Below are positions 1,904-63,077 of a DNA stretch of 64,000 nucleotides, piece after piece (positions within the stretch are counted from its first letter, which is position 1; each line of letters begins with the position of its first letter). Below the pieces are notes generated by a model. It made no database searches. It was given only the letters and a program-made list of their open reading frames with translations, and was not told the origin of the DNA. The position numbers and the translations under genes were made by a program. The stretch is taken from sequence record NC_048053.1; one strand, 5' to 3'.

Positions 1904-3088
<1,185 letters not shown>

Positions 3089-3142: not shown

Positions 3143-4648
3143 ATGGCTAAAACCAAAACTAAAGAGAAGGTTGCAAAGAAATCAAAAGCCGTTGAAGGTG
3201 GAGATCTCGTTGTAGCCAAAGCGAAGAAATCAGTTGTCGAAGCGCTTGAGCCGAAAGCGTTTGGCATTGATATGAACGCATATCTTGACAGCATCATTGA
3301 AGTTGTTGAGAAGAAAACGAAAATCAGTTCTCAGAACATGATGCGTTATGCGACTCGTATCTCAACTGGTATTCTCGCGCTCGATATGTATCTGGACGGC
3401 GGTATTGTTCCGGGCGGCTGGTACACATTTGCAGGCGGCGAACAAAGTTGTAAATCAACTCTCGCTATGTGTATCGCGGCAGCACTGATCAAACAAAACT
3501 TCCGTGGCACCACAAGTTATTTCGACTATGAAGGTTCGGCAGATGAACAGTATGCTGCAAACCAGTTGAAAACTCTCGGTGTTAAAATCGATCCGAAAGA
3601 AATCTTTGGCGTTAAAGATGATGAAACTGGCGAATGGCTGGTTCGTCCTCGTATCCGTTATTATGCGCCGGACAACGGAGAGAAATTCTTCGATTACATG
3701 TCTGGTATTCGCCGCCGTCTCCCGGATAAGATCGTAGAGAAAAACGGTGAAGCATTCTTTATTTTCGAAAACACGAAAGAAAATAAAAAGCTCGTCGGCA
3801 ATAACTACGATAAAAAATGGTTCAGCTCACACAACCAATTCAAAGTTCCTGCTCCTGACGCGCACATGCAAAGCCTTACGCTTGTCGATTCTTATCCTGC
3901 TATGATGCCGGATCAAGTTGATGATGACGAAGGCAGTAAAGCGATGGCGTTGCAGGCGCGTATGTTCTCGGACGGAATCAAACGTTTCCGTGGCGGTATG
4001 CGTCGTAAGATGATGACCGTTGTTGGCATTAACCAATTGCGTCAAAAACCTGCGACGATGTTTGGCAGTCCTGAATATGAACCGTGTGGCGATGCACTGA
4101 AATTTTATTCTGACGTTCGTTTGCGTATGGCGAGCCGTGCTGTTCCGCAAGGTTGGCCTCAGTTGAAAGATGCGCCGGGTATTGTTGGTGAGGATAGCGT
4201 GACAGTAGAAGGCGGCATTGACCGTTATCGCTTCATTGCAATTCGCACAACGAAAAACAAAATGGGCGGCATTCCAAACCAAACAACGTGGGTTCGTTTG
4301 TGGGAGTCCGATGGCAACGGTGAAGCGCGTGGTTTCGATCCTGTGTTCGATACGTGGCATTACATGAAAACTATCGGCCTGATCAATGGAACTCGCAACC
4401 GCATCAAGTTCAATGATCCGTGTCCTCTCGCAAGCAAAGTTGCAATCGACTGGCAGGAATTCCGTACTCTGATCAATGGTAACAAAGAACAGATTACGAA
4501 AATCTGCAAGAAGATGGGCGTTAAGCCTAACTCTCTGCGTGCGTGGTGTTTCAAATTCATCACAACTCCGAAAGGAAAAGATTTGCTGCGTAAGAGTATT
4601 ATTGCAAAAGGCAAATCATCTTCTGACGATGATGGTGATGATGAGTAA
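3143..4648 (+). CDS. uvsX: RecA/UvsX-like recombinase
   Basis: ISTGILALDMYLDGG, Walker A variant GGEQSCKST, Walker B LTLVDS, ALQARMFS, INQLRQK..MFGSPEYEPCGDALKFYSDVRL. Confidence 0.9.
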   Translation: MAKTKTKEKVAKKSKAVEGGDLVVAKAKKSVVEALEPKAFGIDMNAYLDSIIEVVEKKTKISSQNMMRYATRISTGILALDMYLDGGIVPGGWYTFAGGEQSCKSTLAMCIAAALIKQNFRGTTSYFDYEGSADEQYAANQLKTLGVKIDPKEIFGVKDDETGEWLVRPRIRYYAPDNGEKFFDYMSGIRRRLPDKIVEKNGEAFFIFENTKENKKLVGNNYDKKWFSSHNQFKVPAPDAHMQSLTLVDSYPAMMPDQVDDDEGSKAMALQARMFSDGIKRFRGGMRRKMMTVVGINQLRQKPATMFGSPEYEPCGDALKFYSDVRLRMASRAVPQGWPQLKDAPGIVGEDSVTVEGGIDRYRFIAIRTTKNKMGGIPNQTTWVRLWESDGNGEARGFDPVFDTWHYMKTIGLINGTRNRIKFNDPCPLASKVAIDWQEFRTLINGNKEQITKICKKMGVKPNSLRAWCFKFITTPKGKDLLRKSIIAKGKSSSDDDGDDE

Positions 4649-47995: not shown

Positions 47996-49612
47996 ATGGC
48001 AATTGCAACCTCTACCAAACTGATCGGCAAAAACATCGTTCTGCTGGACGGCACCAAAACCAAAATCACTGACGCAATGGCAACTGGTTACAAAGTTGCT
48101 GATCGTTCTGTTCGTGTTGCGTCAAAACAAGTTGCTAAGAAAGGCGCTTGCTATTATGAGATTCCGGTTACGTCTCTGCGTGAACTGATCGATTCCGGTG
48201 AAGGTTACGTTTCTTTCGCTGACAAAGCGATGCAGAAAAAAGTTGGCACTGACGCTTTCCTCGAAAAGCCTGCTAAAACTTCTGGCCGCAAACCGAAAGA
48301 AGAAAAATCTTCCGGTCGCAAACCTAAAGAAGAGAAAACTTCTAACGTGCGTCCGAAACGTGGCAGCAAACCTACCAAAGAAGAAGACGACGCCGAAGAT
48401 AAAGCGTCCCGCCGTGTTAAACGTCGCGGCAATAGCGATGCAGGTTACGGCGCTCTGGCTGAGTTTCTGATCAACGGCGGTAACAGCAAGAAGAAAGTTT
48501 CCCTTGCTGCTATCGATCAGGATCTGGCAACCGTTCTTACTGAACGTCTGGTTAGCACGGTAAAAGAAACTTCGCTGGCGAAATTCGACGGCAACAACGC
48601 AATGATTCAAAACGCATTCGATGTTGGTTACTCAACTGAATTCGATGCTACTGGCGGCGACGTTCGCGTAACACTGAACATCAAATACGCGCTGGAACAG
48701 CCTGAGCCGGAAGAAGTAAACGGTGGTTTCGAAATTTCTCCGGAACTGGCGAAGAAAATCAAAGCGCGTGTTGGTAAAACCGTTGGTAAGAAACTCGCGG
48801 CTGCAATCGCTGAACACCTCGGCGTTGAAGCGTCCGATATGACGGCTGGTACTCTCCTGTCGCGTGAGGGTGAAGATGGTCAGTTTGTTTTCTGTGGCGC
48901 AAGCGGCGAAGACAATAACAAAGCTGTACTGTTTAACACCGAAAGCGAAAAATTCCGCACTGTAGGCGGCGCTTCTCTGGCTAACTACTCTATCGTTGAG
49001 GAAGACGAAGAGGAAGAAGAGTCTGAGGAAGAAGAGGAAGAAGAGATTGAGGAAGAGGAAACCGAAGAAGAGGAAGACGACGCCGAAGGCGAAGACGATT
49101 CCGAAGACGGTGATGACGATTCCGAAGACGGTGACGATGACGCAGAAGGCGAAGATGACGAGGAAGATTCTTTCGAATACGCTTCCGTAAATAAAAAGCA
49201 ACTCGCTAATGTGAACAAAAAAATCACGTCTAAAAATCTGCCGATGCTGTCTAAACTGTGGCGCGTTCCGCAAAGCGCTCTGGTCACTGGCCTGAAACTG
49301 ACTGATGGTGATGATACTTTCATCTTCATTGGTATGGATGATGACGGCGATCTGCTGGTAGTTGAAGAAGGCGCGAAAGAAGTTGTTGCGTTTGACGCTG
49401 ACGATATTCAAAGCCTGTCTGATTACTCTCCGGTTGTTGGTGAAGCAGAAGACGACGCAGAAGGCGAAGACGAAGACTTCGAAGATGACGGCGAAGATTA
49501 CGACGACATGGACATTGAAGAACTGCGCGATGTTGTAGTTCAGAAAGGTCTGGCAAAAGTTCGCGCCGCCGAAAACATGACGGAGAAAAAACTCCGCTCA
49601 CTGCTGAAATAA
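47996..49612 (+). CDS. multidomain acidic protein: N-terminal beta domain, K-rich repeats, duplicated beta domains, D/E tracts, C-terminal HeH-like module
   Basis: AGGAG Shine-Dalgarno, 538 aa, strongly biased codon usage. Confidence 0.8.
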   Translation: MAIATSTKLIGKNIVLLDGTKTKITDAMATGYKVADRSVRVASKQVAKKGACYYEIPVTSLRELIDSGEGYVSFADKAMQKKVGTDAFLEKPAKTSGRKPKEEKSSGRKPKEEKTSNVRPKRGSKPTKEEDDAEDKASRRVKRRGNSDAGYGALAEFLINGGNSKKKVSLAAIDQDLATVLTERLVSTVKETSLAKFDGNNAMIQNAFDVGYSTEFDATGGDVRVTLNIKYALEQPEPEEVNGGFEISPELAKKIKARVGKTVGKKLAAAIAEHLGVEASDMTAGTLLSREGEDGQFVFCGASGEDNNKAVLFNTESEKFRTVGGASLANYSIVEEDEEEEESEEEEEEEIEEEETEEEEDDAEGEDDSEDGDDDSEDGDDDAEGEDDEEDSFEYASVNKKQLANVNKKITSKNLPMLSKLWRVPQSALVTGLKLTDGDDTFIFIGMDDDGDLLVVEEGAKEVVAFDADDIQSLSDYSPVVGEAEDDAEGEDEDFEDDGEDYDDMDIEELRDVVVQKGLAKVRAAENMTEKKLRSLLK

Positions 49613-51461: not shown

Positions 51462-52701
51462 AGATCGTCAAAAGCTGTTAAAACTTTATGGCTGGAAAAT
51501 CATTGATACCTCTCCCAAGTATCTTGAAACTTCCAAAATGGTTTGTGGCGTTCGCCACGTTCGAACCAAGTACGGTGCGCGTGAACAAGTGTACGATGTT
51601 TTGTTTCCGCGCATTCGTGCAAAAACGGTTCTGCGTTTGTTTAAAAACTTGCGCCGTGGTCAACGTGGAATTCTGCTTGAAGAACTTTCAATTCTGTTTG
51701 AGTTGGGATTGGGTGTTCCGAAGCAGAAACAAATCGCCGATTATATCCTGCATCTTAACGATGTGGATGATCCAGAAGTCGGGATTAAGTACATTGGCAA
51801 ACTGATAAAACAGTATATCGCCAATTACAAGTTTTCGATGGATGATCATGATTACATGTACTGCGCTCAATTCACTGAGCAATTGTTGCTGATGAAGAAA
51901 TTCATCGGGAAGACGAAACAGAATGTGAAGAAATCTGTGCGCGTTCCGGAAGGAAAGCCGTGTGTCATGGTTTACTCACTAACTGATTTCAACGGTGCGA
52001 AATTCAGTTTGGTAGATGCTTACGCTTTCTCATCAAACGGTTTTCCGATACCGATTTCAACATCTGTGATGCGAAAAGAGTTTGGTGCTGTTCCGCGCCA
52101 GTTTAACAGCTACGCGTTGAAGTCGCACGGACAGTATATGTTGGTTTTCGGCATTCTGTATTGGAACGAAGACGGCGAAGAAAACTTCCAGCACATGCAG
52201 ACGCTGGACGATGATGAATACGAAGTTCTGGTTGACCATTACGATAAGTATTGTTCGAAAGAACTTCTTGCGGCTCGCAAGTACCGCAACGTTGATCGTG
52301 AAGTGCATAACGCTCATCGTCACGCAATCGAAGTTCTGGCAGTGAAAGAAGACGCAACCAAAAAAGAAAGGCGTTTGGTGCGCGAAGCGGAAACCTATTT
52401 CGCTGAACGTGATAAAGCTGTAAAGCAACTATCACGATTGGAACGAAAGGCCGCAAGCAAACTTGCTGAATCTGGTCCGGTTGCTTCTGCTAAGTTCTTT
52501 GCTCTCGATATCGGGGCAATTGGAATTAGTCGTAAGCTGCGTACATTGGTTAGCACTCCGCCGGAAGTCCTCGCGAAAAGTTTAAACGCTTGGGGATTCA
52601 CAACGGCGCTGTCTGCGAATCATAAATGTCTATCGTCTCGGATCTATTACGGCGTAACTTCTACGCGCCGTAGCTGGCAAATTGAAACGGAGAAAAAATA
52701 A
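51433..52701 (+). CDS. hypothetical protein
   Basis: GAGG Shine-Dalgarno, 422 aa. Confidence 0.7.
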   Translation: MFLGHLLTFEDRQKLLKLYGWKIIDTSPKYLETSKMVCGVRHVRTKYGAREQVYDVLFPRIRAKTVLRLFKNLRRGQRGILLEELSILFELGLGVPKQKQIADYILHLNDVDDPEVGIKYIGKLIKQYIANYKFSMDDHDYMYCAQFTEQLLLMKKFIGKTKQNVKKSVRVPEGKPCVMVYSLTDFNGAKFSLVDAYAFSSNGFPIPISTSVMRKEFGAVPRQFNSYALKSHGQYMLVFGILYWNEDGEENFQHMQTLDDDEYEVLVDHYDKYCSKELLAARKYRNVDREVHNAHRHAIEVLAVKEDATKKERRLVREAETYFAERDKAVKQLSRLERKAASKLAESGPVASAKFFALDIGAIGISRKLRTLVSTPPEVLAKSLNAWGFTTALSANHKCLSSRIYYGVTSTRRSWQIETEKK

Positions 52702-55661
52702 TGAATTCCTCTCAAACTTTTGGAACGGCGTCGCACACTGCATCTGTTACCGATCAGAATCTGAATGCAGGTTCTCCGGCAACTAAAAGCACGGTAATTG
52801 TGGTGCTGTGTCCGACTGTAAACGGCAACCAAATTTTCCGTGCGGAAAATAACGGTAATGTTTCTCAAACTGTCGCGCAGGGTAAAGCTCTCAATCGTCT
52901 GACAGATCTTCTGTCGATGGCGGGGGATAACGCTGGTCATGAACTGATGAGCGCTGCCGCTTCTATTGATGAGCGCTGCAAGCTGAAAGACAGTGCTGCG
53001 ATGATTCTCCGCTATACTGTAAATGGTAGTGTAGAGCGTCTCCAGAAAACTCTGTCTGAGGCGTTGTTTAAGGTCGGCGAAAAAGCTGCAAATGATAATA
53101 CTACGTTAGCGTCGTATGCCAGTCGTTTTGGTGTTCATGCAATCGCAGTATCTGCGGAAAGTAATTCTTACGCAGTCGTTACAGCGATTCGTGATCAACT
53201 GGAAGCGTTCGACCGCAACGAAAGCAATTTTGTTGTTGCGCAGAAAGCAAGTGTTGAGCAAATCAATGCTCCGGTTATCGACTGGTCTGCAACTTCCGCA
53301 AATGTTGTTCTGGAAGGTGCTGCGTTAAGTTTTGTAGTTCGCTCGGAAAAAACCCGCGTGAATTTCCTGATTAATCCTATTAAGGGGAATAATGTTGTGA
53401 GTAACGATCAGAAAGCTCTGTCTGTTTTCAGCCGCGAGAATCAGGCTTCCGTAACTATGGAAGAAAAAGTCGCTGCACTTGAAGCACTCGGTTACGATCT
53501 CGGCGCTATGCCGGATGAAGAGATCGCGCTGTCTTATGATAGCGAGCGTGTTGATTTTCTGGAAGGCGCAGGTGTTGAAGTGAATTCCAGCGACGAAGGC
53601 GAAACTGACGACGCCGAAGAAGGTGAAGAAGAATCCGAAGAAGGTGAAGAGGAAGAGGAAGAAGAAGACGAAGAAGAATTCTCCGCTTCTGAAACTCTGG
53701 CAGAAATTCTGACTAACGCCCAACTGGATCGCGCTCAACTGAAAAAGCTGGTGTTCCTCGCAGGTGGTAAAGTGTTTACCACTGACACCGAAGAAAGTCT
53801 GACGGTGAAACTGCTGGAACTGGTCGAAGAAAAAGACTACAGCGAATTCTTCCAGTTTGCGCTGGACGCTAACGAACGTCTCGGCGGCGTTGATGGCTTT
53901 GCTGACTTCCTGCACGCGGAAAGCGTTCTGGCTACCGACGAAGATGAGGACGACGAAGGCGAAGAAGGCGAAGAAGGCGAAGACGAGGATGATTCTGATG
54001 AAGATGATTCCGAAGACGAAGACGAAGATGATTCTGGCGAAGACGAAGGTGAAGACGAAGATGATTCCGAAGAAGATCTTTCTTTCAACGCTGTGGTAGA
54101 ATTCATCGAACTTATCGGCGGCGATCTGAATCGCGAAGTAATTCGCGCAATTGCTCGCTCCGAAAGTTTCGGCCTGAAAACTTACAAGAACGAAGACGCT
54201 GCTGCGATTTTCGAACGTGTAGTTGAAGTGCTGAACAACAACGAAATCTCTCCGGAAGATTTCGAACAACTGATTCACGATCTGGCGCAGATTGAAGTTG
54301 TTGCCGATGCGTATCCGGAATGGGCTGAGTACGAAGTCAATCCGACGGACTACACTGAACTGTTTGCCTACGAAGGCGGTTCTCTGACTCACGAACAGCG
54401 CGTTGCAGCGCTGGAAGCTGCCGGAAACGATCTCGAAGGTATGGGCATGGTTGCCGTGCTGAAACTTTTCGAAGACTATCGCCGTGAAAATGGTTACGGT
54501 CAGGAAAGTGAAGAAGCCGAAGACGAAACCTATGCGCTGGATTCCGGTGAAGGTGAAACCGACGACGAAGGCGAAGAAGCTGGCGACGAAGAATCCGAAG
54601 AGTCGGAAGAAGAATCTGAGGAAGAAGAATCCGAAGACGAAAACGACGAAGCGTTTGTTTCTGAATCTTCTGAAAACGATCTCGGTACTTTCCTGCGTGT
54701 GCGTCAGGAACAAATGCTGTTGGTCAACTTCGCGCTGACTGATCGCAGTACCTTCGAAGATCTCGCCGAAGAACTTCGCGACCAGAACGGTGTTGATTAT
54801 CGTGTACCAATCAACATGAACGACGAAGCAGAAGGTTCTATGTACCTGCCGCTGACTGTCGCGAGCGATTTGCTGTCCGGTTCCGCTGCGCTTCCGTTTA
54901 TGTCTGATCGCAAAACTTTCAACGTAGAAGATTACGCTGAAAAAATGGCTAACACTATGCGCGGTCAAATCTCGGCGCTGCTGTATGAAGGCCGTCTGGA
55001 AGCTGGACAAGATCCGTATACTAGCGGTTTAGTCCTCGGTGATTTCGTCGAAGATGAAGACGAAGATCTGAATGAGGATGAACTGAGTTCGGAATATCTG
55101 AGCGAACTGGTTGGCGATCATATTCCGATGGCTTCTCTGTATAACGCACATGTTGGCGTGCGTCCGGTTGTTGTCGATACCGAAAGCACTGTTTTGAACA
55201 CTATCGTTCTTAACATTGCAATGCCTTGCATTTGGGGCATCGGCAAGAAGAAAGTAAAAGATCTGGTAATCAGCACTTACAATCGTGTGCTTGCGCACAT
55301 CGGCGAAACTGATATTAAAGTCTATGTCGGTTTCACCCTGAATGCTGGTTCTCTGGTTTCTGATGAAAACCTGCAATCGGTTGTTCGCTCTGTCGGCGAA
55401 ATGGCGAGTGAAGAAATCGCTGTTCACTCCTTCACTACCAACGATGTTCAACGCATCGAAGAAAGTGAAGATCTGGTTGAAGCTGCGCATTCTGTCGGCA
55501 CTGAAAATCTGCCGCTGGCGCTGTTGTCCTCCGGTATCGCTGACGCTGCATTTGCGAACGGCGGTGATCTGATTGTTATCCTGTCTCCTGTTGGTGACAG
55601 TGACGACGAAGATGATTCTGACTCTGATGAAGATGAAGATGAAGACGAGTCCGAAGAGTAA
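52701..55661 (+). CDS. very large acidic protein with repeated helical modules and D/E tracts
   Basis: 986 aa. Repeats EEKVAALEALGYDL / EQRVAALEAAGNDL, plus HeH-like LDRAQLKKLV and LNREVIRAIA segments. Confidence 0.8.
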   Translation: MNSSQTFGTASHTASVTDQNLNAGSPATKSTVIVVLCPTVNGNQIFRAENNGNVSQTVAQGKALNRLTDLLSMAGDNAGHELMSAAASIDERCKLKDSAAMILRYTVNGSVERLQKTLSEALFKVGEKAANDNTTLASYASRFGVHAIAVSAESNSYAVVTAIRDQLEAFDRNESNFVVAQKASVEQINAPVIDWSATSANVVLEGAALSFVVRSEKTRVNFLINPIKGNNVVSNDQKALSVFSRENQASVTMEEKVAALEALGYDLGAMPDEEIALSYDSERVDFLEGAGVEVNSSDEGETDDAEEGEEESEEGEEEEEEEDEEEFSASETLAEILTNAQLDRAQLKKLVFLAGGKVFTTDTEESLTVKLLELVEEKDYSEFFQFALDANERLGGVDGFADFLHAESVLATDEDEDDEGEEGEEGEDEDDSDEDDSEDEDEDDSGEDEGEDEDDSEEDLSFNAVVEFIELIGGDLNREVIRAIARSESFGLKTYKNEDAAAIFERVVEVLNNNEISPEDFEQLIHDLAQIEVVADAYPEWAEYEVNPTDYTELFAYEGGSLTHEQRVAALEAAGNDLEGMGMVAVLKLFEDYRRENGYGQESEEAEDETYALDSGEGETDDEGEEAGDEESEESEEESEEEESEDENDEAFVSESSENDLGTFLRVRQEQMLLVNFALTDRSTFEDLAEELRDQNGVDYRVPINMNDEAEGSMYLPLTVASDLLSGSAALPFMSDRKTFNVEDYAEKMANTMRGQISALLYEGRLEAGQDPYTSGLVLGDFVEDEDEDLNEDELSSEYLSELVGDHIPMASLYNAHVGVRPVVVDTESTVLNTIVLNIAMPCIWGIGKKKVKDLVISTYNRVLAHIGETDIKVYVGFTLNAGSLVSDENLQSVVRSVGEMASEEIAVHSFTTNDVQRIEESEDLVEAAHSVGTENLPLALLSSGIADAAFANGGDLIVILSPVGDSDDEDDSDSDEDEDEDESEE

Positions 55662-55671
55662 TCTGTAAATA
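55661..55671 (+). promoter_or_regulatory. CTGTAAATA motif upstream of the coiled-coil gene
   Basis: Intergenic, immediately after a stop codon. Confidence 0.55.
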
Positions 55672-55716
55672 AATGGTGTAGGGCGAAATGCCTTGCACCA
55701 TTTTTAAGGATTCCCA

Positions 55717-56469
55717 ATGTCTGATACGCAACTTGAAGTTTTACATCGGACACTATTTTCAACGCGTCAGTCACTTGATGATAATATCATGGCACGTCGC
55801 GCAACCGAAAAGGTGTTGGATGAGCGCCTGAGTGAATTAGGCCGTTGTCAGGTTCAACTGAGTATTGCTCAAGAGCGAATTCTGAATCTCCAGACTGAAT
55901 ATAATAATGTTGTGGAGAATTCGGAAATCAAAGCGAAGGCTATGGAAGAAACTTTCCGTACCTCCGAAGCAAAACTGAAAGAAGAAATAGTAATTCTGAA
56001 CGACAAGATTTCGGAACTGCGTGCGCTCTGCCGTGATATGCCGGAAACTCCTGCGGAACATTTGCTGGAAAACGTACTGCATAAAACTATGGCGCATCTG
56101 CATTCAACTGTGGTCTATTTCGCTGCCCTCACGTTGAATTCCAATCCGCAATCTCTGGCTGGTAAAGAGTTGCTCGCGCTGACGAAAAAGCAAACGCTGA
56201 ATCCGGGCAAATTGTTTTCTCTATCTGTAAAGGAAAAGCAGATAGTTCTCGAAAACATTCGTTCGTTTGTGCAAGCAGAACTTGATAATTCTGAATACAC
56301 AAACATCCGTGCGGTAATTAATGCAATGACCGCCTCGGACAAATCGTGGAAGACGTTTCGCGATTGCCTGAAAAATTCTAAGGTGCTTTATTCCCTCGCA
56401 TCTGACAAACTGGAGTTTGACTCTGCGGTAAACGCGGTCGTTGAATTCATTCTTGAACAATTGAAGTAA
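55717..56469 (+). CDS. coiled-coil protein
   Basis: Heptad-rich N-terminal half. AAGGA Shine-Dalgarno. Confidence 0.7.
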   Translation: MSDTQLEVLHRTLFSTRQSLDDNIMARRATEKVLDERLSELGRCQVQLSIAQERILNLQTEYNNVVENSEIKAKAMEETFRTSEAKLKEEIVILNDKISELRALCRDMPETPAEHLLENVLHKTMAHLHSTVVYFAALTLNSNPQSLAGKELLALTKKQTLNPGKLFSLSVKEKQIVLENIRSFVQAELDNSEYTNIRAVINAMTASDKSWKTFRDCLKNSKVLYSLASDKLEFDSAVNAVVEFILEQLK

Positions 56470-56491
56470 TGAACTGGAGTTCGAAATAATC

Positions 56492-57067
56492 ATGGCTAAA
56501 TCCAAGTCCACCTCACTGGTTCCGAAACGTATTGACCGCATCACGAAAAAAGCTGGCGCGATTGCGCAGGTCAAATCTAAACAAACTGATCTGGCTCACG
56601 ATATCGAAATCTCGACTCGTGGCGCACACGAAGTTTCAGGTTTCGTAATCGAAACTACTGCTGACGGTAGCGTAACCATTCGCCACAAAAAAGGCGCTGG
56701 TAGCTCCAAACAGATCGTAAGCACGTTCACCAAAAACCAAATCATTAGCTTTATCGGTGAAGCTGGTGAAATGGGTCAACTGCTGGTTGACGCATACATG
56801 GTTGTTCAGGTGATTCGCGGTCAAACTGTAAAAGTTAAAGACGATGTGATTGTTGCAACTGATATTCAGACTGGCGAAGTCACTCGCATTGCAACCAACA
56901 TTCCGGGCTACGACGTTCGTGCAATTGTTGACGAGGCTGTTGCTTCTAAAAAGTACGGCACTCCGGTTGCATCCGAAAAGAAAAAAGGCGCTAAGGCAGA
57001 AAAAATTGCCAAAGGCGGCAAAGATAAGTCCGGTAAAAAGAAAAAGAAGTCTGACGAAAACTTCTAA
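56492..57067 (+). CDS. basic beta-rich protein with Lys-rich tail (possible nucleic-acid binder)
   Basis: GGAG Shine-Dalgarno, strongly biased codon usage, K-rich C-terminus. Confidence 0.7.
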   Translation: MAKSKSTSLVPKRIDRITKKAGAIAQVKSKQTDLAHDIEISTRGAHEVSGFVIETTADGSVTIRHKKGAGSSKQIVSTFTKNQIISFIGEAGEMGQLLVDAYMVVQVIRGQTVKVKDDVIVATDIQTGEVTRIATNIPGYDVRAIVDEAVASKKYGTPVASEKKKGAKAEKIAKGGKDKSGKKKKKSDENF

Positions 57068-57083
57068 TTCGGTTCCGGCCTGA

Positions 57084-57220
57084 ATCTGTAAAGTAACGTT
57101 GAAGGACAGAATCTGTAAATCAATTCTGTCAGACAGAAACTGTAAACAGTGAATGTCAAACGCCACTGATTAATTTCGGTGGCGTCAGTTAAAAACATTT
57201 TTCTCTTAATCTGTAAATAG
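57084..57220 (+). promoter_or_regulatory. array of four CTGTAAA motifs (57086, 57113, 57140, 57211)
   Basis: First three are spaced exactly 27 bp apart. Confidence 0.65.
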
Positions 57221-57272
57221 TAATTGAACAAAGCGTTCATTACTGAACTTTCCTAAAAGGATAAAATGAATC

Positions 57273-58073
57273 ATGGCTAAAGCAAAGAAAACCTCTAACG
57301 TGGCAATGGAAACTCTGGCTAAAATGGCTGGCCTGCTGGTTGAAGCGGCTGCCGATGCAGAAGTTGCAGAACTTCTCTCCGAAGCTGGTCTGACTGTTGC
57401 CGCTAAAGGTAAAGGCAAAGCTAAAGCTAAAGCTGAACCGAAAGCAAAAGGCGGCAAGAAAAAGAAAGTGACTGCCGCACAAATCGTTGAAGCCATCGAA
57501 GATGGTGAGTCCATCGAACTCGAAGGCACTGACGAAAAAGTTCTGCGCGAGGCCGTGGTCAAAGCAAAACTGACCAGTAAGAAAAAAGCGGAGAGCCTCG
57601 ATGAAGAGGAACTGCTGGAACTGATTCAGGAAGCGTTTGGTTCGTCTGACGAAGATGAAGACGACGAAGACGAGGATGATTCTTATGAAGATGATTCCGA
57701 TGATGAAGACGGCGACGACGAAGACGACGAGGATGATGAAGACTCGGACGACGACGAAGACGGCGACGACGAAGACGACGAAGACGGCGACGACGAAGAC
57801 GACGAAGACGACGACGAAGACGACGAAGATGATGAGGACGACGAAGACGAGGACGAAGATGAAGATCGTGATCTGGAAGACCTCGACGAAGACGAACTCC
57901 GCGCGTTAGCCATCGAAGAAGGCGTGTTCACCAAAGCGCAGGCCAAAAAGAAAGATGAAGATGCACTCCGCGAAGCACTGGAAGCGCACTTCGCTGGTGA
58001 CGACGATGAAGACGAAGACGAAGACGACGAAGACTTCGACGACGAAGACGAAGACGACGAAGACGACGAGTAA
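57273..58073 (+). CDS. extremely acidic protein with two HeH-like modules (nucleoplasmin/chaperone-like composition)
   Basis: DEKVLREAVVKAKLTSKKKAESLDEEELLELIQ and DEDELRALAIEEGVFTKAQAKKKDEDALREALE, separated by ~65 D/E-rich residues. Confidence 0.75.
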   Translation: MAKAKKTSNVAMETLAKMAGLLVEAAADAEVAELLSEAGLTVAAKGKGKAKAKAEPKAKGGKKKKVTAAQIVEAIEDGESIELEGTDEKVLREAVVKAKLTSKKKAESLDEEELLELIQEAFGSSDEDEDDEDEDDSYEDDSDDEDGDDEDDEDDEDSDDDEDGDDEDDEDGDDEDDEDDDEDDEDDEDDEDEDEDEDRDLEDLDEDELRALAIEEGVFTKAQAKKKDEDALREALEAHFAGDDDEDEDEDDEDFDDEDEDDEDDE

Positions 58074-58244
58074 TTAATCATCGACGGCACGCCCCGCTAA
58101 GTTAAATGACGAGCGCGGGGCAAAAAATCTTCAAAGATTTTTGAAGAAAATTTTGTAGAAGTATGTTGAACATGCTAATGTACTTCTACGCAGAAAACGA
58201 ATTTCTGTTTTTCTCCACAACGAATTTTTATACTGAGGTATATC

Positions 58245-58766
58245 ATGACTAAGAAAGTTATTTCCGGCCTGAACAAACAAATCAAATCCATCGAAAAATC
58301 CGATGCCGCTCTGGTGAAGACCATCGAAGGTTTGCAGAAACAGCGTGAAAATCTGGCGTCTACCAAAGACGGTCTGAACGAACAGGTTGCTGCGCTGTCG
58401 GGCGAAGCTGCTCCGGTTAAAGGTAAAGCTAAGGCTGAACCGAAAGCTGCTAAAGGTAAAGCTAAAGCTGAACCGAAAGCTGCTAAAGGCAAAAAAGCTG
58501 CCGAAGAAAAACCGGCTAAAGTGAAAAAAGAAAAAGCCGCTAAAACTGAAAAGCCTGCTAAGGCTGACAAGAAAGCTGCGAAAGGCGAAGGCAAAAAAGC
58601 CAAAGCTGAAAAGCCTGCCAAAGCTGATAAGAAAGCTGCGAAAGGCGAAGGCAAAAAAGCCAAAGCTGAAAAGCCTGCTAAGGGCAAAAAAGTGAAAGGC
58701 GAAAAAGCCAGCAAGAAAAAAGGCAAAAACGCCGACGCAGGTTTTGAATTCGAACTGGACGATTAA
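58245..58766 (+). CDS. histone H1-like Lys/Ala-rich repeat protein (AlgP/Hc2-like composition)
   Basis: N-terminal coiled coil, then KGKAKAEPKAA x2 and EKPAKADKKAAKGEGKKAKA x2, ending in a short acidic tail FEFELDD. Confidence 0.7.
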   Translation: MTKKVISGLNKQIKSIEKSDAALVKTIEGLQKQRENLASTKDGLNEQVAALSGEAAPVKGKAKAEPKAAKGKAKAEPKAAKGKKAAEEKPAKVKKEKAAKTEKPAKADKKAAKGEGKKAKAEKPAKADKKAAKGEGKKAKAEKPAKGKKVKGEKASKKKGKNADAGFEFELDD

Positions 58767-58792
58767 TAGTTCCCTGCGCTGATTAAGTTGAT

Positions 58793-58826
58793 ACGGGTTA
58801 GGGATTTCTCCCTAGCCCGTTTTTCG
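58793..58826 (+). terminator. intrinsic terminator after the H1-like gene
   Basis: ACGGGTTAGGGA-TTTC-TCCCTAGCCCGT-TTTT. Confidence 0.85.
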
Positions 58827-58858
58827 TTTCTGACCGATTTTTCTCGATAGGTTTCTAA

Positions 58859-59200
58859 ATGGATCTTCACTCACGTTTCAAAAAACTTAACGATGATTTG
58901 CTCGAACTTCAAAATGCTGTTCATCGCGTAGTTCGTATCTCTCCAACAAAATTCGCCGTTTGTTTTTATGATCGTCATGAGCAATCGCTGCGAACCAACG
59001 TTATTGACTCTCGTTCAGCACACGAAATAAAACTCATTCAAGAAATGTCCGGTGCTGAGTTGCAGGCATACGGCAATTTCGTTTCTGCCATTCAGGAATG
59101 GTGTGAAGCTGAATCCCCCGGTGATTTTCCTATCACGTATGACAAAGCAGACTCTGACAGCTACCGCACGCTGATTGATGCTATGACCGTTCGGGAATAG
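58859..59200 (+). CDS. hypothetical protein
   Basis: ORF between a terminator and the topoisomerase promoter. Confidence 0.6.
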   Translation: MDLHSRFKKLNDDLLELQNAVHRVVRISPTKFAVCFYDRHEQSLRTNVIDSRSAHEIKLIQEMSGAELQAYGNFVSAIQEWCEAESPGDFPITYDKADSDSYRTLIDAMTVRE

Positions 59201-59201
59201 C

Positions 59202-59260
59202 AACTCTGCAAATCTGTGTCCAAAACGTCGATAGCTTATCTAATACTTTAGTGCTAGAAT
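59202..59260 (+). promoter_or_regulatory. box-type promoter of the topoisomerase operon (GCAAA 59208, -10 TAGAAT 59255)
   Basis: Member of the 10-copy family. Confidence 0.8.
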
Positions 59261-59319
59261 AGGCGGCGGGGAAGTCCGTATATGTAGACGTGTGAGGGAA
59301 TCACGTTCGGAGAAAAATC

Positions 59320-61395
59320 ATGGCAAAGAAAGCCGAAAAAATAACTGTTCTGAAAAAGAAACCTGTTTCTAAAGCAGTAGCGAAAGAAGTTAAGAGCAAG
59401 AAGAATGCTCAAGACGGATTCACCGCGCTTTCTGCTATGGAAGGGTTGCGTAAAAACGCTGGCATGTATCTCGGCGAACCGGGCGAGGACATGGCGTATC
59501 GTAGCGTTAAAGAAGTTGTAGATAACGCATACGATGAAGCAGTAGCAGGACGAAATAAATTAATCGAAGTCATCTTCAATGAAGACAAAGATATTTATAT
59601 CGTCGCTGATGGCGCTGGCGGTATTCCAACAACGCTGAAAAAACTTTATGACGGTACAACCGAAGCGATCATGACTTCCGCATTTACGCGTGTTCACGCT
59701 GGCGGTAAATTTGATAATGACGCATACAAAACTTCTGCGGGTACTCACGGTGTAGGTGTTACTGCCGTTAACGCCGTATCCGAAAGAATTCGTGTGTGGT
59801 CAAACTTCGATAAGAAAACAAAAGGCATGGAATATTCCAAAGGTGAGTGCGTAACTGCAATCAAGAATTGGGAAGTCGATGCCGATGTAATGAAGCTGCT
59901 ACAAGATCCGGCGAAGAAATACGGAACGATTGTTGCGTGGACACTTGATCAAACTGTTGTGAGTGTTGATGCGCGTCGTGGTAAGAAACTGCCGAAGGAT
60001 TACACTCACGCAAAACTTAATGTTGAGCGCACGCGTAATTGGCTGCAAGCAATGTCGGATCTTAATCCGGGATTGGAAATTCGCTTCACGCATATCAAAG
60101 ATAAAAAAGGTAAGCGTCAAGTTTTCCTGAATAAGAAAACTATGGGCGACGTTATCAAACGTATCGCCGAAGAACGCGAATTAGAACTGGACGGAAAGCC
60201 GTTTGAGTTGAAAACTGATTTCGTTAGTCTCGCGATCAGTTGGGCTGACTATCCGGATTCTGATCTTCTGCAAACGTTCGTCAACACATCGCCGACTATT
60301 GATCACGGTTGGCACGTAACAGGATTCCGTAGCGCACTGGAAGCCGCGCTTAAACCTTTCCTGCCTACACCGAAGAAAGGAAGCAAAGCAAAACCAAAAT
60401 CATTTACCGCCAGCGATTTGTTAGTTGGCGCGATTGGTATGTTCGACTGGCGAATGCACGGCGCACAATATACTTCGCAGGTGAAAGATAAACTTGCAAG
60501 TCGTGTTGAAAAAGAAGTTCAAGCGATTGTTGAAAAGCCGTTGACTGAATTCTTTGCTAAGAATAAATCTCTTGCGAAGAAAATCATTAAACGCGCAGAA
60601 GCAATGATGAAAGGTCGTGATGAATTGAGCGCTGTTATTCGTTCAATGGCAGACACGAAGAAGAAAGTTGCAGGTAACTCGCTTCCTTCTTTCCTCGAAG
60701 CTGCGCCTCGCTGTAAACCGTTTGAGCGTGAATTAGTTGTGGTGGAAGGTGATTCCGCTGGCGGTACTGGTAAGAACGCTCGCGATCCTTTCTATCAAGA
60801 AATCATGAAAGCAGGCGGTAAACCTCTTAACGGTTTGAAAGCTCCGCTGGCAAAAGTTCTTGTGCATAAACAGGTGCAAGGTTTGTTGGTGAGTATCGGC
60901 GCGGATTTAAAAACGCTCGATCCAAAAGCAGAAGCGCCAACGTTGAGCACGGAAAAATTGCGTATCGGCAATCTGTTGTTCCTCGCAGATGCTGACCCGG
61001 ATGGCAGTCACATTAACACGCTGTTCCTTGCTGTTATTTATCGACTGTTGCCGGATATGATGCGCGAAGGCCGTGTGTGGGTTGTTGATGCTCCGCTATA
61101 TAATGTGATGTACAAAGGCAAACACTATGGCGGCATGACGTTTGAAGAATGTCGTGCGATTGCACCTAGCGCGGTAAAAGATAGTGAGATCGTTCGTGCA
61201 AAAGGTTGGGGTGAAGTTAACCCTGATGTTCTGCGTGCGATTGCTTTCGATCCGGAAACGCGCCGACTCATTCGAATCAATCCGTTTGAGAATGCAGAGC
61301 AAGAACGTTTCTTCCGTGGTGTTGTTGCGGAGGATGCGATCTATCGCCGCCGTCTGTTAGGTCTGGTTGAAGTAAATGCAGGGGATGATGAATAA
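59320..61395 (+). CDS. gyrB: type IIA DNA topoisomerase, GyrB/ParE-like subunit
   Basis: [47 protein letters not shown], Toprim VEGDSA and [14 protein letters not shown]. Confidence 0.93.
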
Positions 61396-63077
61396 TGGCA
61401 ACCATTAAGCCGAAGAAAAACGCGAAGCCAGAAAAAACGAAAGTTAAACCTGCTGCGAAATCGAAAGCCGTTGCGAAAAAATCAAAAGGCATTGAAGTTG
61501 CTGATATCAAGACGGGCAAAAAACTCAAGAAGAAAACTAATACTGCAATCAGCACTGTAGTAGAAAGTAAGTATCCGCTCAAAGGACAGAAGCAAGAAAA
61601 CATTCGCGATGAAGGTTTGGCTGCTTTTACTGAGCGTGAGTTGCGTAAGTACGGATCTTACGTTGTTGAAGATCGTGCCATTCCAGATTTTCGCGATGGG
61701 TTGAAACCTGTTCACCGTGCGATCATTTGGGCAATGTCAGATCTCAACCTGTTACCTTCTGGTGGGTATAAAAAGAGTGCGCGTGTTGTTGGTGATGCTC
61801 TCGGTAAATATCATCCTCATGGTGATAGCGCGTGTTATGGCGCAATGGTTACGGTCGCTAACACCGTGCCTCCTGCGGTAGACGGTCAGGGCAATTGGGG
61901 TACACCAACTGATCCGTTCGCTGCGATGCGTTATACCGAAGCAAAACAAAGTCGTTTCACGCAAATGTTTTTGCTGGATAAAAACTATTTGCAAGTTACA
62001 CCGATGGTAAGCAACTTCTCAAACGATATGAAGTTGCCGCTGCATCTTCCTGCGCTGCTGCCTTTCATGCTGTTTGCTGGCACCGTTCCCGCTCCGGCCT
62101 ATGGTGTGAAGTGTGGGAACCCAACGTTCACTTTTGCTAGTGTTGCGCGTGTTGTGATTGATATGCTTAACGGTGTTGAATACGATCACAAAAAACTCGC
62201 GAAGACGTTAGTTATTCAGCATGAGTTTGGTTGTAAAAATATTACTTCCAGTAGCGAAATGTTGAACCTGATGCGAACCGGGCGCGGCAAAGTAACATAC
62301 GAACCGGAAATGAAAATCGATCTGAAACGCAAAACGATTGTGATTCAGACTTTCGTTCCGCTCGGTTTCGCGTCGGAAGATGGCATTGAAAAAATGCTGA
62401 TGAAGTTCTCAACCATTCAGGGCGTATCAACTGCGCATTCTGTTGGCGGTGAGCGAAACCCGGACGCGGGAACTTATGGTTGTGCTGTTGAAGTTGTTGC
62501 TGCGCGTGGCGTCGATGAAGATCGATTCTACGAAATCGCGCAAGAAGTTCAAAAGCTAGTTACCAAATCTGTTTCGTATATTCTCGGTGTTACTGTTCGT
62601 CACGGCGACAAGCCGAACAGCTTTAAGTATCTCGATTATCTCTCATACTTCAAAGCATGGGTGACGTATCGCAAGAAACTTGAAGTGCGTATGCTGGATT
62701 GGTTGATAGCGCGTGCGCAAAAAGAACTTCACTTACAGGAGGTTTATTTATTCGCGGTAGAGAACAAAGACAAGTTGCTTAAAGCACTGCCTAAAGTTCT
62801 GTCCTCGAAGACTCCAGATGAAGCTCTTGCAAAAGCAATCAAACTCCCGGTTGAAGATGCAAAAATAATTTTGGATCGTCAAGTGCGTAAGTTGGCAACA
62901 CTTGAAAAAGCCGATCTGGTTGCGAAGATTAAAGCGTTGAAAGCAGATATCGCAGGCTGGCAGAAAGGGCTGAAAGCTCCGGGCAAGTATGCAGCGAAAG
63001 ACACCGAAGATCGTGTTGTTCGTTACTTGAAAAATCCGGATGCTAATAAGCCTAAACTCGGCTACGGAAAACTGTAA
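61395..63077 (+). CDS. gyrA: type IIA DNA topoisomerase, GyrA/ParC-like subunit lacking the C-terminal beta-pinwheel
   Basis: [46 protein letters not shown] (catalytic Tyr). Confidence 0.93.

Follow-up and report, generated by a model that had tools for sequence, protein, structure and literature searches.

A conserved gene trio for oppositely charged proteins in Dickeya phage vB_DsoM_JA29, with a possible role on DNA during replication

Known systems of basic and acidic DNA-associated proteins

Eukaryotic systems offer known examples of DNA-condensing basic proteins encoded by viruses and of acidic chaperones; bacteriophage T4 has basic internal proteins and acidic peptides in its head, and adenovirus core protein VII is served by host acidic chaperones. 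PhaF from Pseudomonas putida joins a helical or zipper-type N-terminal domain to an H1-like DNA-binding tail, and T7 Ocr and T4 Arn are compact, folded acidic mimics of DNA. In the jumbo-phage papers and reviews covered, no bacteriophage was found to be described as having a polyanion gene and a polycation gene that form a dedicated, co-transcribed pair. It has been reported that 'moraphages' encode predicted Hc1-type H1-like proteins that match PF07432, for which neither an acidic partner nor a gene trio is reported (PMC12619734).

The window analysed here, a 64,000-nucleotide stretch of record NC_048053.1, belongs to Dickeya phage vB_DsoM_JA29, a jumbo phage of the PaBG/Lu11 group. Three adjacent genes, gp308, gp309 and gp310, form a conserved unit, hereafter the trio, and encode a beta-core protein, a polyanion and a zipper-bearing polycation (Table 1). 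A first-pass annotation had grouped these genes with a type II topoisomerase into a chromatin module; all of the genes that it placed between 56,492 and 63,077 are present there and agree with the deposited JA29 annotation (gp308–gp313).

Like the C-terminal domain of histone H1 together with prothymosin-alpha or nucleoplasmin, the trio brings together a disordered Lys/Ala(/Pro) polycation and a poly-Asp/Glu polyanion of comparable total charge, and by this analogy a non-specific DNA coating tuned by the polyanion would be expected. Unlike H1, gp310 has a leucine zipper, lacks the winged-helix globular domain and carries about 15% acidic residues in its tail and 4% Pro, while gp309 matches no nucleoplasmin, NAP or prothymosin model. 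PhaF is closer in layout, since in both proteins an N-terminal helical oligomerisation region is followed by a Lys/Ala/Pro repeat tail. However, gp310 differs from PhaF, Pseudomonas AlgP and Chlamydia Hc1/Hc2 in its acidic, Phe-containing C-terminal tip and its always-adjacent polyanion gene, neither of which, to our knowledge, is known for these bacterial H1-like proteins. The moraphage proteins resemble gp310 in being phage-encoded, Lys-rich, histone-H1-like and found in large phages, but gp310 has no PF07432 match. Similarly, gp309 shares with Ocr and Arn a very acidic composition, a probable production before assembly and the potential to draw DNA-binding proteins away from DNA, whereas it has a largely disordered predicted structure, bears about 100 net negative charges and matches no family. 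The T4 internal proteins and adenovirus VII are also virus-encoded basic proteins found alongside acidic counterparts, and DNA condensation is predicted for gp310 as well; the trio differs in its replication-class motif, its position outside the structural arm and the absence of its PaBG orthologues from the reported virion proteome.

Table 1. Features of the trio and its surroundings (positions in the window)
Feature	Position	Strand	Description
gp306	52701..55661	+	large acidic protein, 986 aa, net charge −183
Single promoter-like motif	55661..55669	+	upstream of gp307
gp307	55717..56469	+	hypothetical protein, 250 aa
gp308	56492..57067	+	trio member 1; 191 aa, pI 9.8; phrog_22271
Array of four promoter-like motifs (AAATCTGTAAATA type)	57084..57217	+	ahead of gp309; three at 27-nt spacing
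gp309	57273..58073	+	trio member 2, polyanion; 266 aa; phrog_30618
gp309→gp310 spacer	58074..58244	+	structured, four hairpins
gp310	58245..58766	+	trio member 3; 173 aa; phrog_38087
Intrinsic terminator, strong	58793..58820	+	12-bp stem and T-run; closes the trio after gp310
gp311	58859..59200	+	lineage-specific hypothetical protein, 113 aa; variable slot between trio and topoisomerase
gp312	59320..61395	+	type IIA topoisomerase large subunit; GHKL ATPase and Toprim; phrog_543
gp313	61395..63077	+	type IIA topoisomerase breakage-reunion subunit, 560 aa; PF00521, E = 1.7e-60; phrog_551

Conservation of the trio

The order beta-core protein, polyacidic protein, zipper/poly-Lys protein is kept in nine lineages, namely JA29, Alexandra, Yoloswag, fHe-Yen9-02, the marine NCTB, PaBG (genes 124–126) and the metagenomic contigs L012, L015 and L017, across which gp308 identity drops to about 30%. 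Among the six phages with complete genomes, the polyacidic protein varies in length from 150 to 294 aa with a net charge of −89 to −100, and the poly-Lys protein carries +26 to +31. The basic/acidic pair proposed earlier thus stands as a conserved unit, which retains its gene order, its charge architecture, its terminator and its likely signals for co-transcription from the enterobacterial phages to PaBG, NCTB and the metagenomic contigs. Metagenomic relatives of gp309 range from −24 to −101 in net charge, which may mean either that charge matching is not general or that the repeat has collapsed in those assemblies. No trio member has detectable homology to a protein of known function, and none reaches the curated linker histone, Hc1, nucleoplasmin, SAP/HeH or Ocr families. 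Standard pipelines miss or mis-name genes of this type, one having been left uncalled across an assembly gap and another annotated as a mechanosensitive channel, so the class may be under-counted.

In the enterobacterial lineages, the upstream neighbour of the trio is gp306, which has several poly-Asp/Glu tracts and a conserved globular C-terminal part; it shares 34–39% identity with its orthologues in Alexandra, Yoloswag and fHe-Yen9-02, and only marginal matches link it to the acidic proteins encoded upstream in NCTB, PaBG and L012. Homology between gp306 and gp309 was considered and rejected (hhalign probability 26%). The gp307 gene keeps its position in enterobacterial relatives and is missing from the distant lineages.

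Architecture of the three proteins

In the AlphaFold2 model, gp308 has an all-beta core (residues ~30–157, pLDDT ~76–90) between disordered basic N- and C-terminal tails. Its layout comprises a basic N-terminal arm, the beta core with an invariant Arg-His-Lys loop, a Lys-rich tail and an acidic tip whose last residue is Phe. The fold has no match in the PDB and resembles only uncharacterised proteins (those of Alexandra and PaBG and two other viral entries), and the family comprises 64 representative clusters. The tail of the beta-core protein varies among lineages, being basic in some and N-terminal or acidic in others; the lysine tail noted earlier is therefore not a family trait, and this variability makes the role of gp308 less certain.

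The second protein, gp309, contains 126 Asp and Glu residues (47%) and has a net charge of −97. After a basic N-terminal tip and a short helical N-domain come two helix–K-loop–helix modules and then an acidic C-tail, in which one Phe is invariant; a 14-residue C-terminal motif is identical in 11 of 14 gp309 relatives. The AlphaFold2 model is mostly disordered, with the two helix–short helix–helix modules (residues 88–123 and 206–240) confidently predicted on either side of a nearly pure Asp/Glu tract of about 75 residues. This tract and its two helical flanks had been noticed in the first-pass annotation, which took the flanks to be HeH-like; that identity could not be confirmed. Pieces of gp309 match no SAP, HeH, Rho_N or related profile (PF02037, PF07498 and relatives) at E ≤ 10, the SAP/HeH profiles match none of 14 true gp309 orthologues at E ≤ 1, and a Foldseek structural search found nothing. 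In P0097, a remote relative, residues 250–286 form a bona fide SAP domain, but the alignment with gp309 falls on a distinct P0097 module (197–230). No Pfam family matches gp309 at E ≤ 0.01. Its earlier description as acidic chaperone-like likewise finds no family to rest on: nucleoplasmin, NAP1, SET and prothymosin-alpha are absent from the family-wide matches at E ≤ 1, and the poly-acidic tract is the only feature shared with them. Membership of the Ocr and ArdA families of DNA mimics was rejected, given the disordered model and the lack of any Pfam, annotated PHROG or PADLOC match.

The third protein, gp310, had been described as a Lys/Ala/Pro repeat protein resembling H1. It is indeed rich in Lys (51 of 173 residues, 29%) and Ala (36, 21%), but Pro is scarce (7), and its net charge is +27. 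A seven-heptad leucine zipper (residues ~6–51) is followed by a Lys/Ala/Pro/Glu repeat tail of about 110 residues, and the protein closes with an acidic tip where two Phe are invariant. The Lys-rich tail is kept in the orthologues, and the gene contains 60-nt and 33-nt tandem repeats. With its acidic tail residues and little Pro, gp310 falls short of a true H1 tail in cationic character. Linker histones H1/H5 were excluded, as gp310 and three orthologues give no Linker_histone match even at E ≤ 10, and Hc1 (PF07432) is absent from the matches of all four at the same threshold; searches of Pfam and NCBIfam with gp310 returned no match to Hc1, phasins or another family. The likeness to H1 is compositional and not homologous.

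Promoter-like motifs, terminator and codon usage

Ahead of gp309, copies of A[AT]CTGTAAA lie at 57084, 57111, 57138 and 57209, with a hairpin (57160–57185) between the third and fourth. Across the window, the exact 9-mer was counted 13 times where 0.8 would be expected, only on the + strand. Besides the array and the copy upstream of gp307, the motif lies within gp307 (56223) and gp308 (56824). Relatives have 2, 2, 2 and 1 copies at the corresponding place. The promoter array reported earlier is therefore real, although it sits within the block, between gp308 and gp309, and not ahead of it. Genome-wide, the motif has 44 copies, every one on the transcribed strand, and is found upstream of the genes for ligase, both DNA polymerases, clamp loader, primase, SSB, exonuclease and sigma factor; none was found upstream of the capsid or tail genes examined. 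No late promoter class could be defined, so the trio may also be expressed late.

The gp309 and gp310 genes have a structured spacer and a terminator in common. The spacer contains a conserved hairpin (58151–58193), present in one copy per genome and followed by a small hairpin and a U-run; its RNA fold has a z-score of −3.96, 4 of 18 pairs in the consensus fold still pair with both sides changed, and no Rfam family matches it. An equivalent terminator follows the poly-Lys gene in Alexandra, fHe-Yen9-02, Yoloswag, NCTB and PaBG.

The effective codon number (Nc) is 31.7 for gp308, 36.8 for gp310 and 41.2 for gp309, compared with 45–46 for the topoisomerase genes and a background of 48.8 ± 5.3. 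The strong bias that the first-pass annotation had assigned to the whole block thus applies to gp308 and gp310, is moderate in gp309 and is absent from the topoisomerase genes. In gp308 and gp310, it is at least that of the major capsid gene and is typical of abundant proteins, which suggests that the trio is apparently highly expressed.

Topoisomerase II and Lys-rich tails

A phage-specific topoisomerase II clade has been described by Iyer et al. (PMC7824862). As had been proposed, gp312 and gp313 match GyrB-type and GyrA-type Pfam models: gp312 matches PF02518 (HATPase_c), PF00204 (DNA_gyraseB), PF01751 (Toprim) and PF00986 (DNA_gyraseB_C), and gp313 matches only DNA_topoisoIV, the GyrA/ParC N-terminal domain. 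DNA gyrase proper was rejected since the GyrA C-terminal beta-pinwheel wrapping domain is not among the gp313 Pfam matches; by its domain content, the enzyme is topo IV/T4-like and not a supercoiling gyrase. It resembles the T4-type two-subunit enzyme (phrog_543/phrog_551) in its full GHKL–Toprim and breakage-reunion domains and differs from it in Lys-rich N-terminal extensions of about 30 residues on gp312 and 55 on gp313. These extensions are conserved in the group, on both subunits, in Alexandra, Yoloswag, fHe-Yen9-02, NCTB and PaBG, and no discussion of them was found in the literature covered on these phages and enzymes.

The topoisomerase genes follow the trio at a distance of 0.5–3 kb in JA29, Alexandra, Yoloswag, fHe-Yen9-02, NCTB and contig L012. 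In PaBG, however, topoisomerase genes 146/147 are about 13 kb and 20 genes away from the trio, so that the topoisomerase is not an obligatory member of the module; it is a frequent neighbour outside the unit. Lys-rich tails are also found on SSB, clamp loader, primase, RecA-like protein and DnaB, as on both topoisomerase subunits, and are about 11-fold enriched on the DNA-transaction proteins of JA29 (p = 4e-5), by which a Lys tail marks DNA-associated proteins in this phage.

Proposed function and alternative explanations

Judged from composition, architecture and context, the trio probably coats or organises DNA. A conserved unit, a motif shared with replication genes and high-expression codons fit an abundant DNA-associated polycation with a dedicated polyanion. 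Most likely, this would be a replication-phase, DNA-coating polycation and its own polyanionic partner, a reading in which we infer every functional step, namely DNA binding, the gp309–gp310 interaction, compaction, oligomeric state, timing and whether phage or host DNA is the target. That gp308–gp310 form one conserved expression unit whose oppositely charged products act on DNA in the replication phase of infection is put forward tentatively, with a chance slightly below even. In this mechanism, gp310 would be an oligomeric polycation whose leucine zipper joins several flexible Lys/Ala/Pro tails, an architecture that would fit non-specific coating and bridging of DNA as with the H1 C-terminal domain and bacterial H1-like proteins. 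The dedicated polyanion gp309 would combine a small helical docking domain with a huge Asp/Glu tract able to compete with DNA for Lys-rich tails, its conserved C-terminal motif being read as aromatic-in-acid, and would probably buffer, chaperone or release gp310 and other Lys-tailed proteins. As a novel beta-fold partner, gp308 probably touches nucleic acid or anchors the other two. If architecture predicts behaviour, this phage group would provide a minimal model, in a bacterial virus, for DNA coating of the H1 type under disordered-polyanion control, and together with the Lys-tailed replication proteins the trio may show how jumbo phages that form no nucleus organise or protect replicating DNA. 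A further reading, which we consider rather improbable, makes the trio the scaffold of an electrostatic, membrane-less replication compartment, where gp309, perhaps joined by gp306 and further polyacidic proteins, would undergo charge-driven condensation with gp310 and phage DNA, and Lys-rich terminal tails would be address tags gathering the replisome; compared with the proteinaceous 'phage nucleus' of chimalliviruses, such a condensate would be a protein-only alternative. The shielding of DNA from host defences (restriction, CRISPR) suggested earlier found no support, and PADLOC gave no match.

The two charged proteins may instead have separate targets in host take-over, the polyacid being a decoy or DNA mimic for nucleoid proteins, nucleases and other host DNA-binding proteins, comparable to T7 Ocr and T4 Arn, and the polycation condensing or silencing the host nucleoid. 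The extreme Asp/Glu density of gp309, the replication-class promoter-like motif and the apparently high expression are compatible with this, and Lys-rich H1-like proteins have been reported to stop DNA and protein synthesis on expression in E. coli (summarised in PMC12619734). We nevertheless regard it as unlikely: gp309 is predicted to be disordered and not a folded, DNA-shaped mimic, it has no Ocr/ArdA-type Pfam match and no PADLOC match, and the strict adjacency, common terminator and similar polyanion and polycation charge in six genomes argue for a coupled function. Packaging inside the head, with a polycation that neutralises capsid DNA and is ejected with it and a polyacid that serves as a scaffold or core protein removed or processed at maturation, would agree with a codon bias equal to that of the major capsid gene and with the head maturation protease that the phage encodes; it is nonetheless doubtful at best, as the motif is common to replication genes and none of the capsid and tail genes examined is preceded by it, and the trio lies among replication/early-type genes in the non-structural arm. 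In addition, the 14 virion gel bands identified by MALDI (PMC7412058) include no product of PaBG genes 124–126, a weak negative because that list covers only Coomassie-visible, trypsin-detectable bands, in which Lys-rich and Asp/Glu-rich proteins are easily missed. A role as accessory factors of the phage topoisomerase, for example in loading it on DNA or stimulating it there, draws on the proximity in five phages and contig L012 and on the conserved extensions of both subunits, but is very unlikely in view of the distance in PaBG, the strong terminator and variable genes that intervene, the topoisomerase genes' lack of the trio's codon bias, which implies very unequal stoichiometry, and the Lys tails on many other replication proteins. 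Recent tandem duplications in gp310, the variable tract lengths and the lack of known-family homology would also suit unimportant low-complexity reading frames kept by chance or repeat expansion; this explanation, already disfavoured, is hardly credible, since order, domain architecture and terminal motifs, as well as promoters and terminator, persist down to about 30% identity and the codon bias is strong.

Conservation of the three-gene core

The window is 100% identical to Dickeya phage vB_DsoM_JA29 (NC_048053.1, genus Salmondvirus, 253 kb), record base 186001 being window base 1, and JA29 has been placed in the PaBG/Lu11/Y3/Alexandra 'Lupandier' group of jumbo myophages (PMC7412058). Among gp308–gp313, only the two topoisomerase genes carry a functional annotation in the deposited record, and gp308–gp311 are discussed neither in the JA-phage paper nor in the PaBG paper. 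No description of the trio gp308, gp309 and gp310, of phage polyanion/polycation pairs or of Lys-tailed phage replisomes was found in the jumbo-phage literature searched; the most similar case there is an H1-like protein of Hc1 type, predicted in metagenomic 'moraphages' (PMC12619734).

By tblastn, gp308 was matched in 58 phage records (Erwinia, Dickeya, Yersinia and phage NCTB) and the N-terminus of gp310 in 57. The entire block is syntenic in Alexandra, Yoloswag and fHe-Yen9-02, in the order ~1000-aa acidic protein, ~290-aa protein, beta-core protein, polyacid, polyK protein, variable small genes and topoisomerase II, and the three small proteins show 46–61% identity to the JA29 trio. In the marine phage NCTB, with a gp308 identity of only ~30%, the three genes again stand in this order, with topoisomerase downstream; its beta-core protein has an N-terminal basic tail, its polyacid has 294 aa, a net charge of −100 and four helical modules, and its zipper protein with a Lys/Ala/Pro tail has a net charge of +28. 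The PaBG orthologues of gp308, gp309 and gp310 are genes 126 (gp308 HMM match, E = 1.3e-26), 125 (150 aa, 67% Asp/Glu, net −93, without helical modules) and 124 (33% Lys, net +31), and the trio is present again on three metagenomic contigs found via remote gp308 relatives. Since the order of the trio recurs in NCTB, PaBG and the metagenomic contigs, the robust conserved unit is the three-gene core. Topoisomerase II, which the first-pass annotation had counted into the unit, drops out of it: PaBG topoisomerase genes 146/147 lie ~13 kb from the trio, so that topoisomerase is a frequent, not obligatory, neighbour, and gp306, gp307 and gp311 are lineage-restricted. Despite two-fold length variation, the net charge of the polyacid stays between −89 and −100 in all six complete phage genomes; in metagenomic relatives it ranges from −24 to −101, where assembly collapse of the repeat is possible.

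Composition and predicted structure of the trio proteins

The open reading frames of the first-pass annotation are all present as described. gp308 has 191 aa and a pI of 9.8, gp309 has 266 aa with 126 Asp+Glu and a net charge of −97, and gp310 has 173 aa with 51 Lys, 36 Ala, 7 Pro and a net charge of +27. AlphaFold2 with a 14-sequence alignment confidently predicts an all-beta core for gp308 (residues ~30–157) with disordered basic tails on both sides. Members of the gp308 family share a basic arm at the N-terminus and, in the beta-core, an invariant loop (Arg-His-Lys…Gly-Ser-Ser); the tail varies, being basic in JA29, N-terminal in NCTB, and long and acidic in the metagenomic proteins P0050 and P0035. 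The fold has no PDB match (best probability 0.30), its matches being limited to uncharacterised proteins of Alexandra, PaBG and two other viral entries, and an exhaustive profile search returned 64 representative clusters, none annotated.

In gp309, the only parts predicted with confidence by AlphaFold2 are two helix-short helix-helix modules (residues 88–123 and 206–240) and one preceding helix; the remainder, including the ~75-residue Asp/Glu tract that separates the modules, is predicted to be disordered. Members of the family have a basic tip followed by a ~35-residue hydrophobic helical segment in the N-terminal part. The helical modules number from zero to four, the Asp/Glu tract is large, and one lone aromatic residue lies close to the acidic C-terminus; the final 14 residues are the same in 11 of the 14 relatives that were retrieved. 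gp309 was not matched by any model for nucleoplasmin, NAP, prothymosin, Ocr/ArdA, SAP, HeH or Rho_N, and its predicted structure has no Foldseek match. A remote relative, P0097, contains a genuine SAP domain, but the gp309 module aligns with another P0097 module; a HeH/SAP reading of the modules is plausible.

In the gp310 family the heptads run without a break, each of the seven d positions being Leu or Ile; a Lys/Ala/Pro/Glu repeat tail follows, and the acidic tip at the C-terminus has one to three Phe, two of which are invariant in a four-genus alignment. The proposed membership of gp310 in the H1 family was not borne out, as neither gp310 nor its orthologues matched any curated family at E ≤ 10, linker-histone and Hc1 (PF07432) included, apart from coiled-coil noise. 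A region-restricted large-database search with gp310 residues 1–56 gave zero matches and also missed close relatives, and PADLOC and NCBIfam gave nothing relevant. In C-terminal alignments, each protein of the trio terminates in a short acidic tip that includes an aromatic or Leu residue, and acidic C-terminal tips are also found on the RecA-like protein, the topoisomerase large subunit and gp213; they are reminiscent of the partner-binding acidic tails of single-strand-binding proteins.

Transcription signals and codon usage

The promoter array noted earlier is real and lies between gp308 and gp309, not ahead of the block: four copies of A[AT]CTGTAAA lie at 57084, 57111, 57138 and 57209, three of them at 27-nt spacing. 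Against 0.8 expected, the window contains the exact 9-mer 13 times. Genome-wide, with the JA29 record outside the window scanned in separate, unjoined pieces, there are 44 copies, all on the transcribed strand of their own genome arm, with the extended consensus AAATCTGTAAATA and no conserved upstream partner; an ORF starts within 124 nt downstream in 34 of the 44, typically at ~40–45 nt. The motif lies upstream of the genes for NAD-ligase, both DNA polymerases, clamp loader, primase, SSB, exonuclease, recombination endonuclease and sigma factor. Because it precedes replication genes and none of the capsid, sheath or tube genes examined, it is best read, from its position, as a putative promoter element of replication-phase genes. 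Seven copies within 55661–57217 form the densest cluster seen in the JA29 genome. In the sole other multi-copy array, three copies lie in a 1-kb stretch devoid of annotated genes, upstream of gp106, a small hypothetical gene that lacks codon bias; the stretch yielded no tRNA. A motif (…CTTTTTAAA…) that precedes two genes of the capsid region was considered as a 'late' promoter and rejected as a class, with only 4 of 13 copies on the transcribed strand, and therefore an absence of late promoters at the trio cannot be asserted.

In relatives, the promoter-like motif precedes the polyacid gene in 2, 2, 2 and 1 copies and is confined to the coding strand over the fetched loci, and a strong intrinsic terminator directly follows the polyK gene in every lineage checked. 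The gp309–gp310 spacer lacks the promoter-like motif, and its predicted folding is far stronger than that of shuffled sequences (z = −3.96). Its hairpin has a conserved 17-nt loop, and maintains 4 of 18 stem pairs through two-sided changes (n = 4 sequences). After it come a small hairpin and a U-run; the structured spacers have no Rfam match. As a lead from four sequences, this arrangement suggests a joint transcript for gp309 and gp310, with regulated read-through, and the hairpin may be an attenuator or operator that sets the polyanion:polycation ratio.

The strong codon bias ascribed to the whole block applies to gp308 (Nc 31.7) and gp310 (Nc 36.8) vs 48.8 ± 5.3 for 41 other window genes; it is weaker in gp309 and gp306 (Nc 41) and absent from the topoisomerase genes (Nc 45–46). 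Asp-GAC, Ala-GCT and Glu-GAA are used more, and Gly-GGA/GGG less. These shifts are at least as large as in the major capsid gene (Nc 36.9), which suggests that the codon-biased trio proteins are very abundant. No tRNA genes were found in JA29. PaBG carries five tRNAs, for Lys, Asp, Ala and Thr, the first three being dominant residues of the charged low-complexity proteins.

Lys-rich tails and the topoisomerase

gp312 and gp313 match GyrB-type and GyrA-type Pfam domains and phage topoisomerase II PHROGs, as had been proposed; gp313 is without the GyrA wrapping domain, so the enzyme is T4/topo IV-like and not a gyrase. The Lys-rich N-terminal extensions of both subunits are kept in Alexandra, Yoloswag, fHe-Yen9-02, NCTB and PaBG. 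Lys-rich segments, defined as at least 9 Lys per 25 residues, also occur on the SSB, clamp loader, primase, RecA-like protein and DnaB of JA29 (see table) and on an exonuclease, are found on none of its annotated capsid or tail proteins, and are ~11-fold enriched on DNA-transaction proteins (p = 4e-5, count of annotated products). The terminal tails are NLS-like and occur on most replisome and recombination proteins. Judged from the protein sequences, the Lys-rich tail is a mark of DNA-associated proteins within the JA29 lineage, which supports a DNA-related role of gp308 and gp310.

Locations of the trio, regulatory elements and charged proteins (unprefixed positions, window; L006–L009, pieces of the JA29 record; L011, PaBG)
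Feature	Location	Strand	Remarks
gp308	56492-57067	+	beta-core protein
gp309	57273-58073	+	polyacid
gp310	58245-58766	+	polyK protein
Trio terminator	58793-58820	+	
Hairpin upstream of polyK gene	58151-58193		same position in L003, L004, L005; one per genome
Second promoter-like array	JA29 record 77407-78409 (L007:27407-28409)	minus	
SSB gp223	1904-3088		C-terminal ~100 residues: poly-Lys/Ser blocks alternating with poly-Asp
RecA-like gp224	3143-4648		Lys-rich N-terminus
Topoisomerase subunits	59320-59410 and 61395-61560		Lys-rich N-termini
Clamp loader	L009:15718-16938		Lys-rich N-terminus
Primase	L009:30503-31567		Lys-rich C-terminus
DnaB	L006:4-1467		Lys-rich C-terminus
gp273	31631-33796		near-pure Asp/Glu tract
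gp301	47996-49612		near-pure Asp/Glu tract
gp132	L008:1-1325		near-pure Asp/Glu tract; adjoins capsid gene
gp142	L008:10440-12365		near-pure Asp/Glu tract
gp175	JA29 record 150308-150973 (L009:308-973)	minus	second low-complexity basic protein
PaBG tRNAs	L011:35229-37844 (PaBG record 120228-122843)		Lys(UUU) x2, Asp(GUC), Ala(UGC), Thr(UGU)

Proposed role and alternatives

The best-supported reading, held tentatively and at a little under even confidence, is that the trio forms an abundant, replication-phase, DNA-associated electrostatic system. gp310 would oligomerise through its zipper and, as the polycation, coat or bridge DNA. gp309, disordered and polyanionic, would be dedicated to buffering or chaperoning gp310 and other Lys-tailed proteins, and gp308 would be a novel beta-fold partner. 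This is essentially the phage H1/anti-H1 pair of the first-pass annotation, an idea strengthened by deep co-conservation, shared transcription-unit signals, promoter class and codon bias, and shorn of claimed family membership, topoisomerase membership and any link to host defence.

The genes could instead serve independent host take-over functions, a DNA-mimic decoy and a nucleoid condenser, which is unlikely. The pattern of Lys tails prompts the further hypothesis of an electrostatic DNA-replication condensate of polyanion, polycation and phage DNA, in which the tails would be replisome address tags; we regard it as quite improbable. To a similar degree doubtful is the packaging of the trio products as internal head proteins; PaBG genes 124–126 are not among 14 virion gel bands in what was a shallow survey (PMC7412058). 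Topoisomerase accessory factors, an idea that the frequent proximity of the two gene sets would fit and their separation in PaBG would not, are very unlikely, and low complexity without meaning is hardly credible for this set of genes. A 3:1 charge balance (three zipper-linked gp310 and one gp308 vs one gp309) fits arithmetically in six complete genomes and is kept as speculation only, metagenomic relatives varying widely.

Related charged proteins and annotation artefacts

JA29 encodes at least six strongly polyacidic proteins; besides gp309 they include gp273, gp301, gp306, gp132 and gp142, and the tracts of the large proteins gp273, gp301, gp132 and gp142 have 19–24 acidic residues per 25. 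gp306 was rejected as a gp309 paralogue (hhalign probability 26%). It is not supported as a fourth universal member, since its local matches to the acidic proteins encoded upstream in NCTB, PaBG and the metagenomic contig L012 are no more than marginal. gp175 (221 aa, 27% Lys, Thr- and Pro-rich) has strong codon bias (Nc 35.4) and could be a further abundant DNA- or virion-associated polycation.

In the metagenomic proteins P0050, P0035, P0054 and P0032 (L015:4240-5019, L017:3309-3992 on metagenomic contigs), a 50–95-residue poly-Asp/Glu tail replaces the Lys tail of the beta-core. Such 'fusions' were rejected as Rosetta-stone evidence, as the genomes concerned keep a separate polyacid gene and an adjoining polyK gene; they show variable tail polarity, not fusion of two genes. 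P0092, P0093 and P0097 form a separate family with a ~150-residue globular N-domain, poly-Asp/Glu tracts and SAP-like modules, one of which is a bona fide SAP domain, and a basic tail in two members; their likeness to gp309 is limited to the module-plus-polyacid design.

The PaBG 'alginate regulator algZ', considered as the gp310 orthologue on the suspicion that its name came from an AlgP-like low-complexity hit, is an unrelated small ribbon-helix-helix-type protein, the true orthologue being PaBG_124. Annotation artefacts include the 'large-conductance mechanosensitive channel' label of the NCTB polyK gene (L010:10514-11098) and the note on PaBG_125 (L011:4795-5247) of likeness to a ribosome assembly factor, and at L012:5571-6819 the polyacid gene is uncalled where an N-filled assembly gap breaks the repeat. 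With polyacid and polyK genes uncalled or misnamed, the class is therefore likely under-counted.
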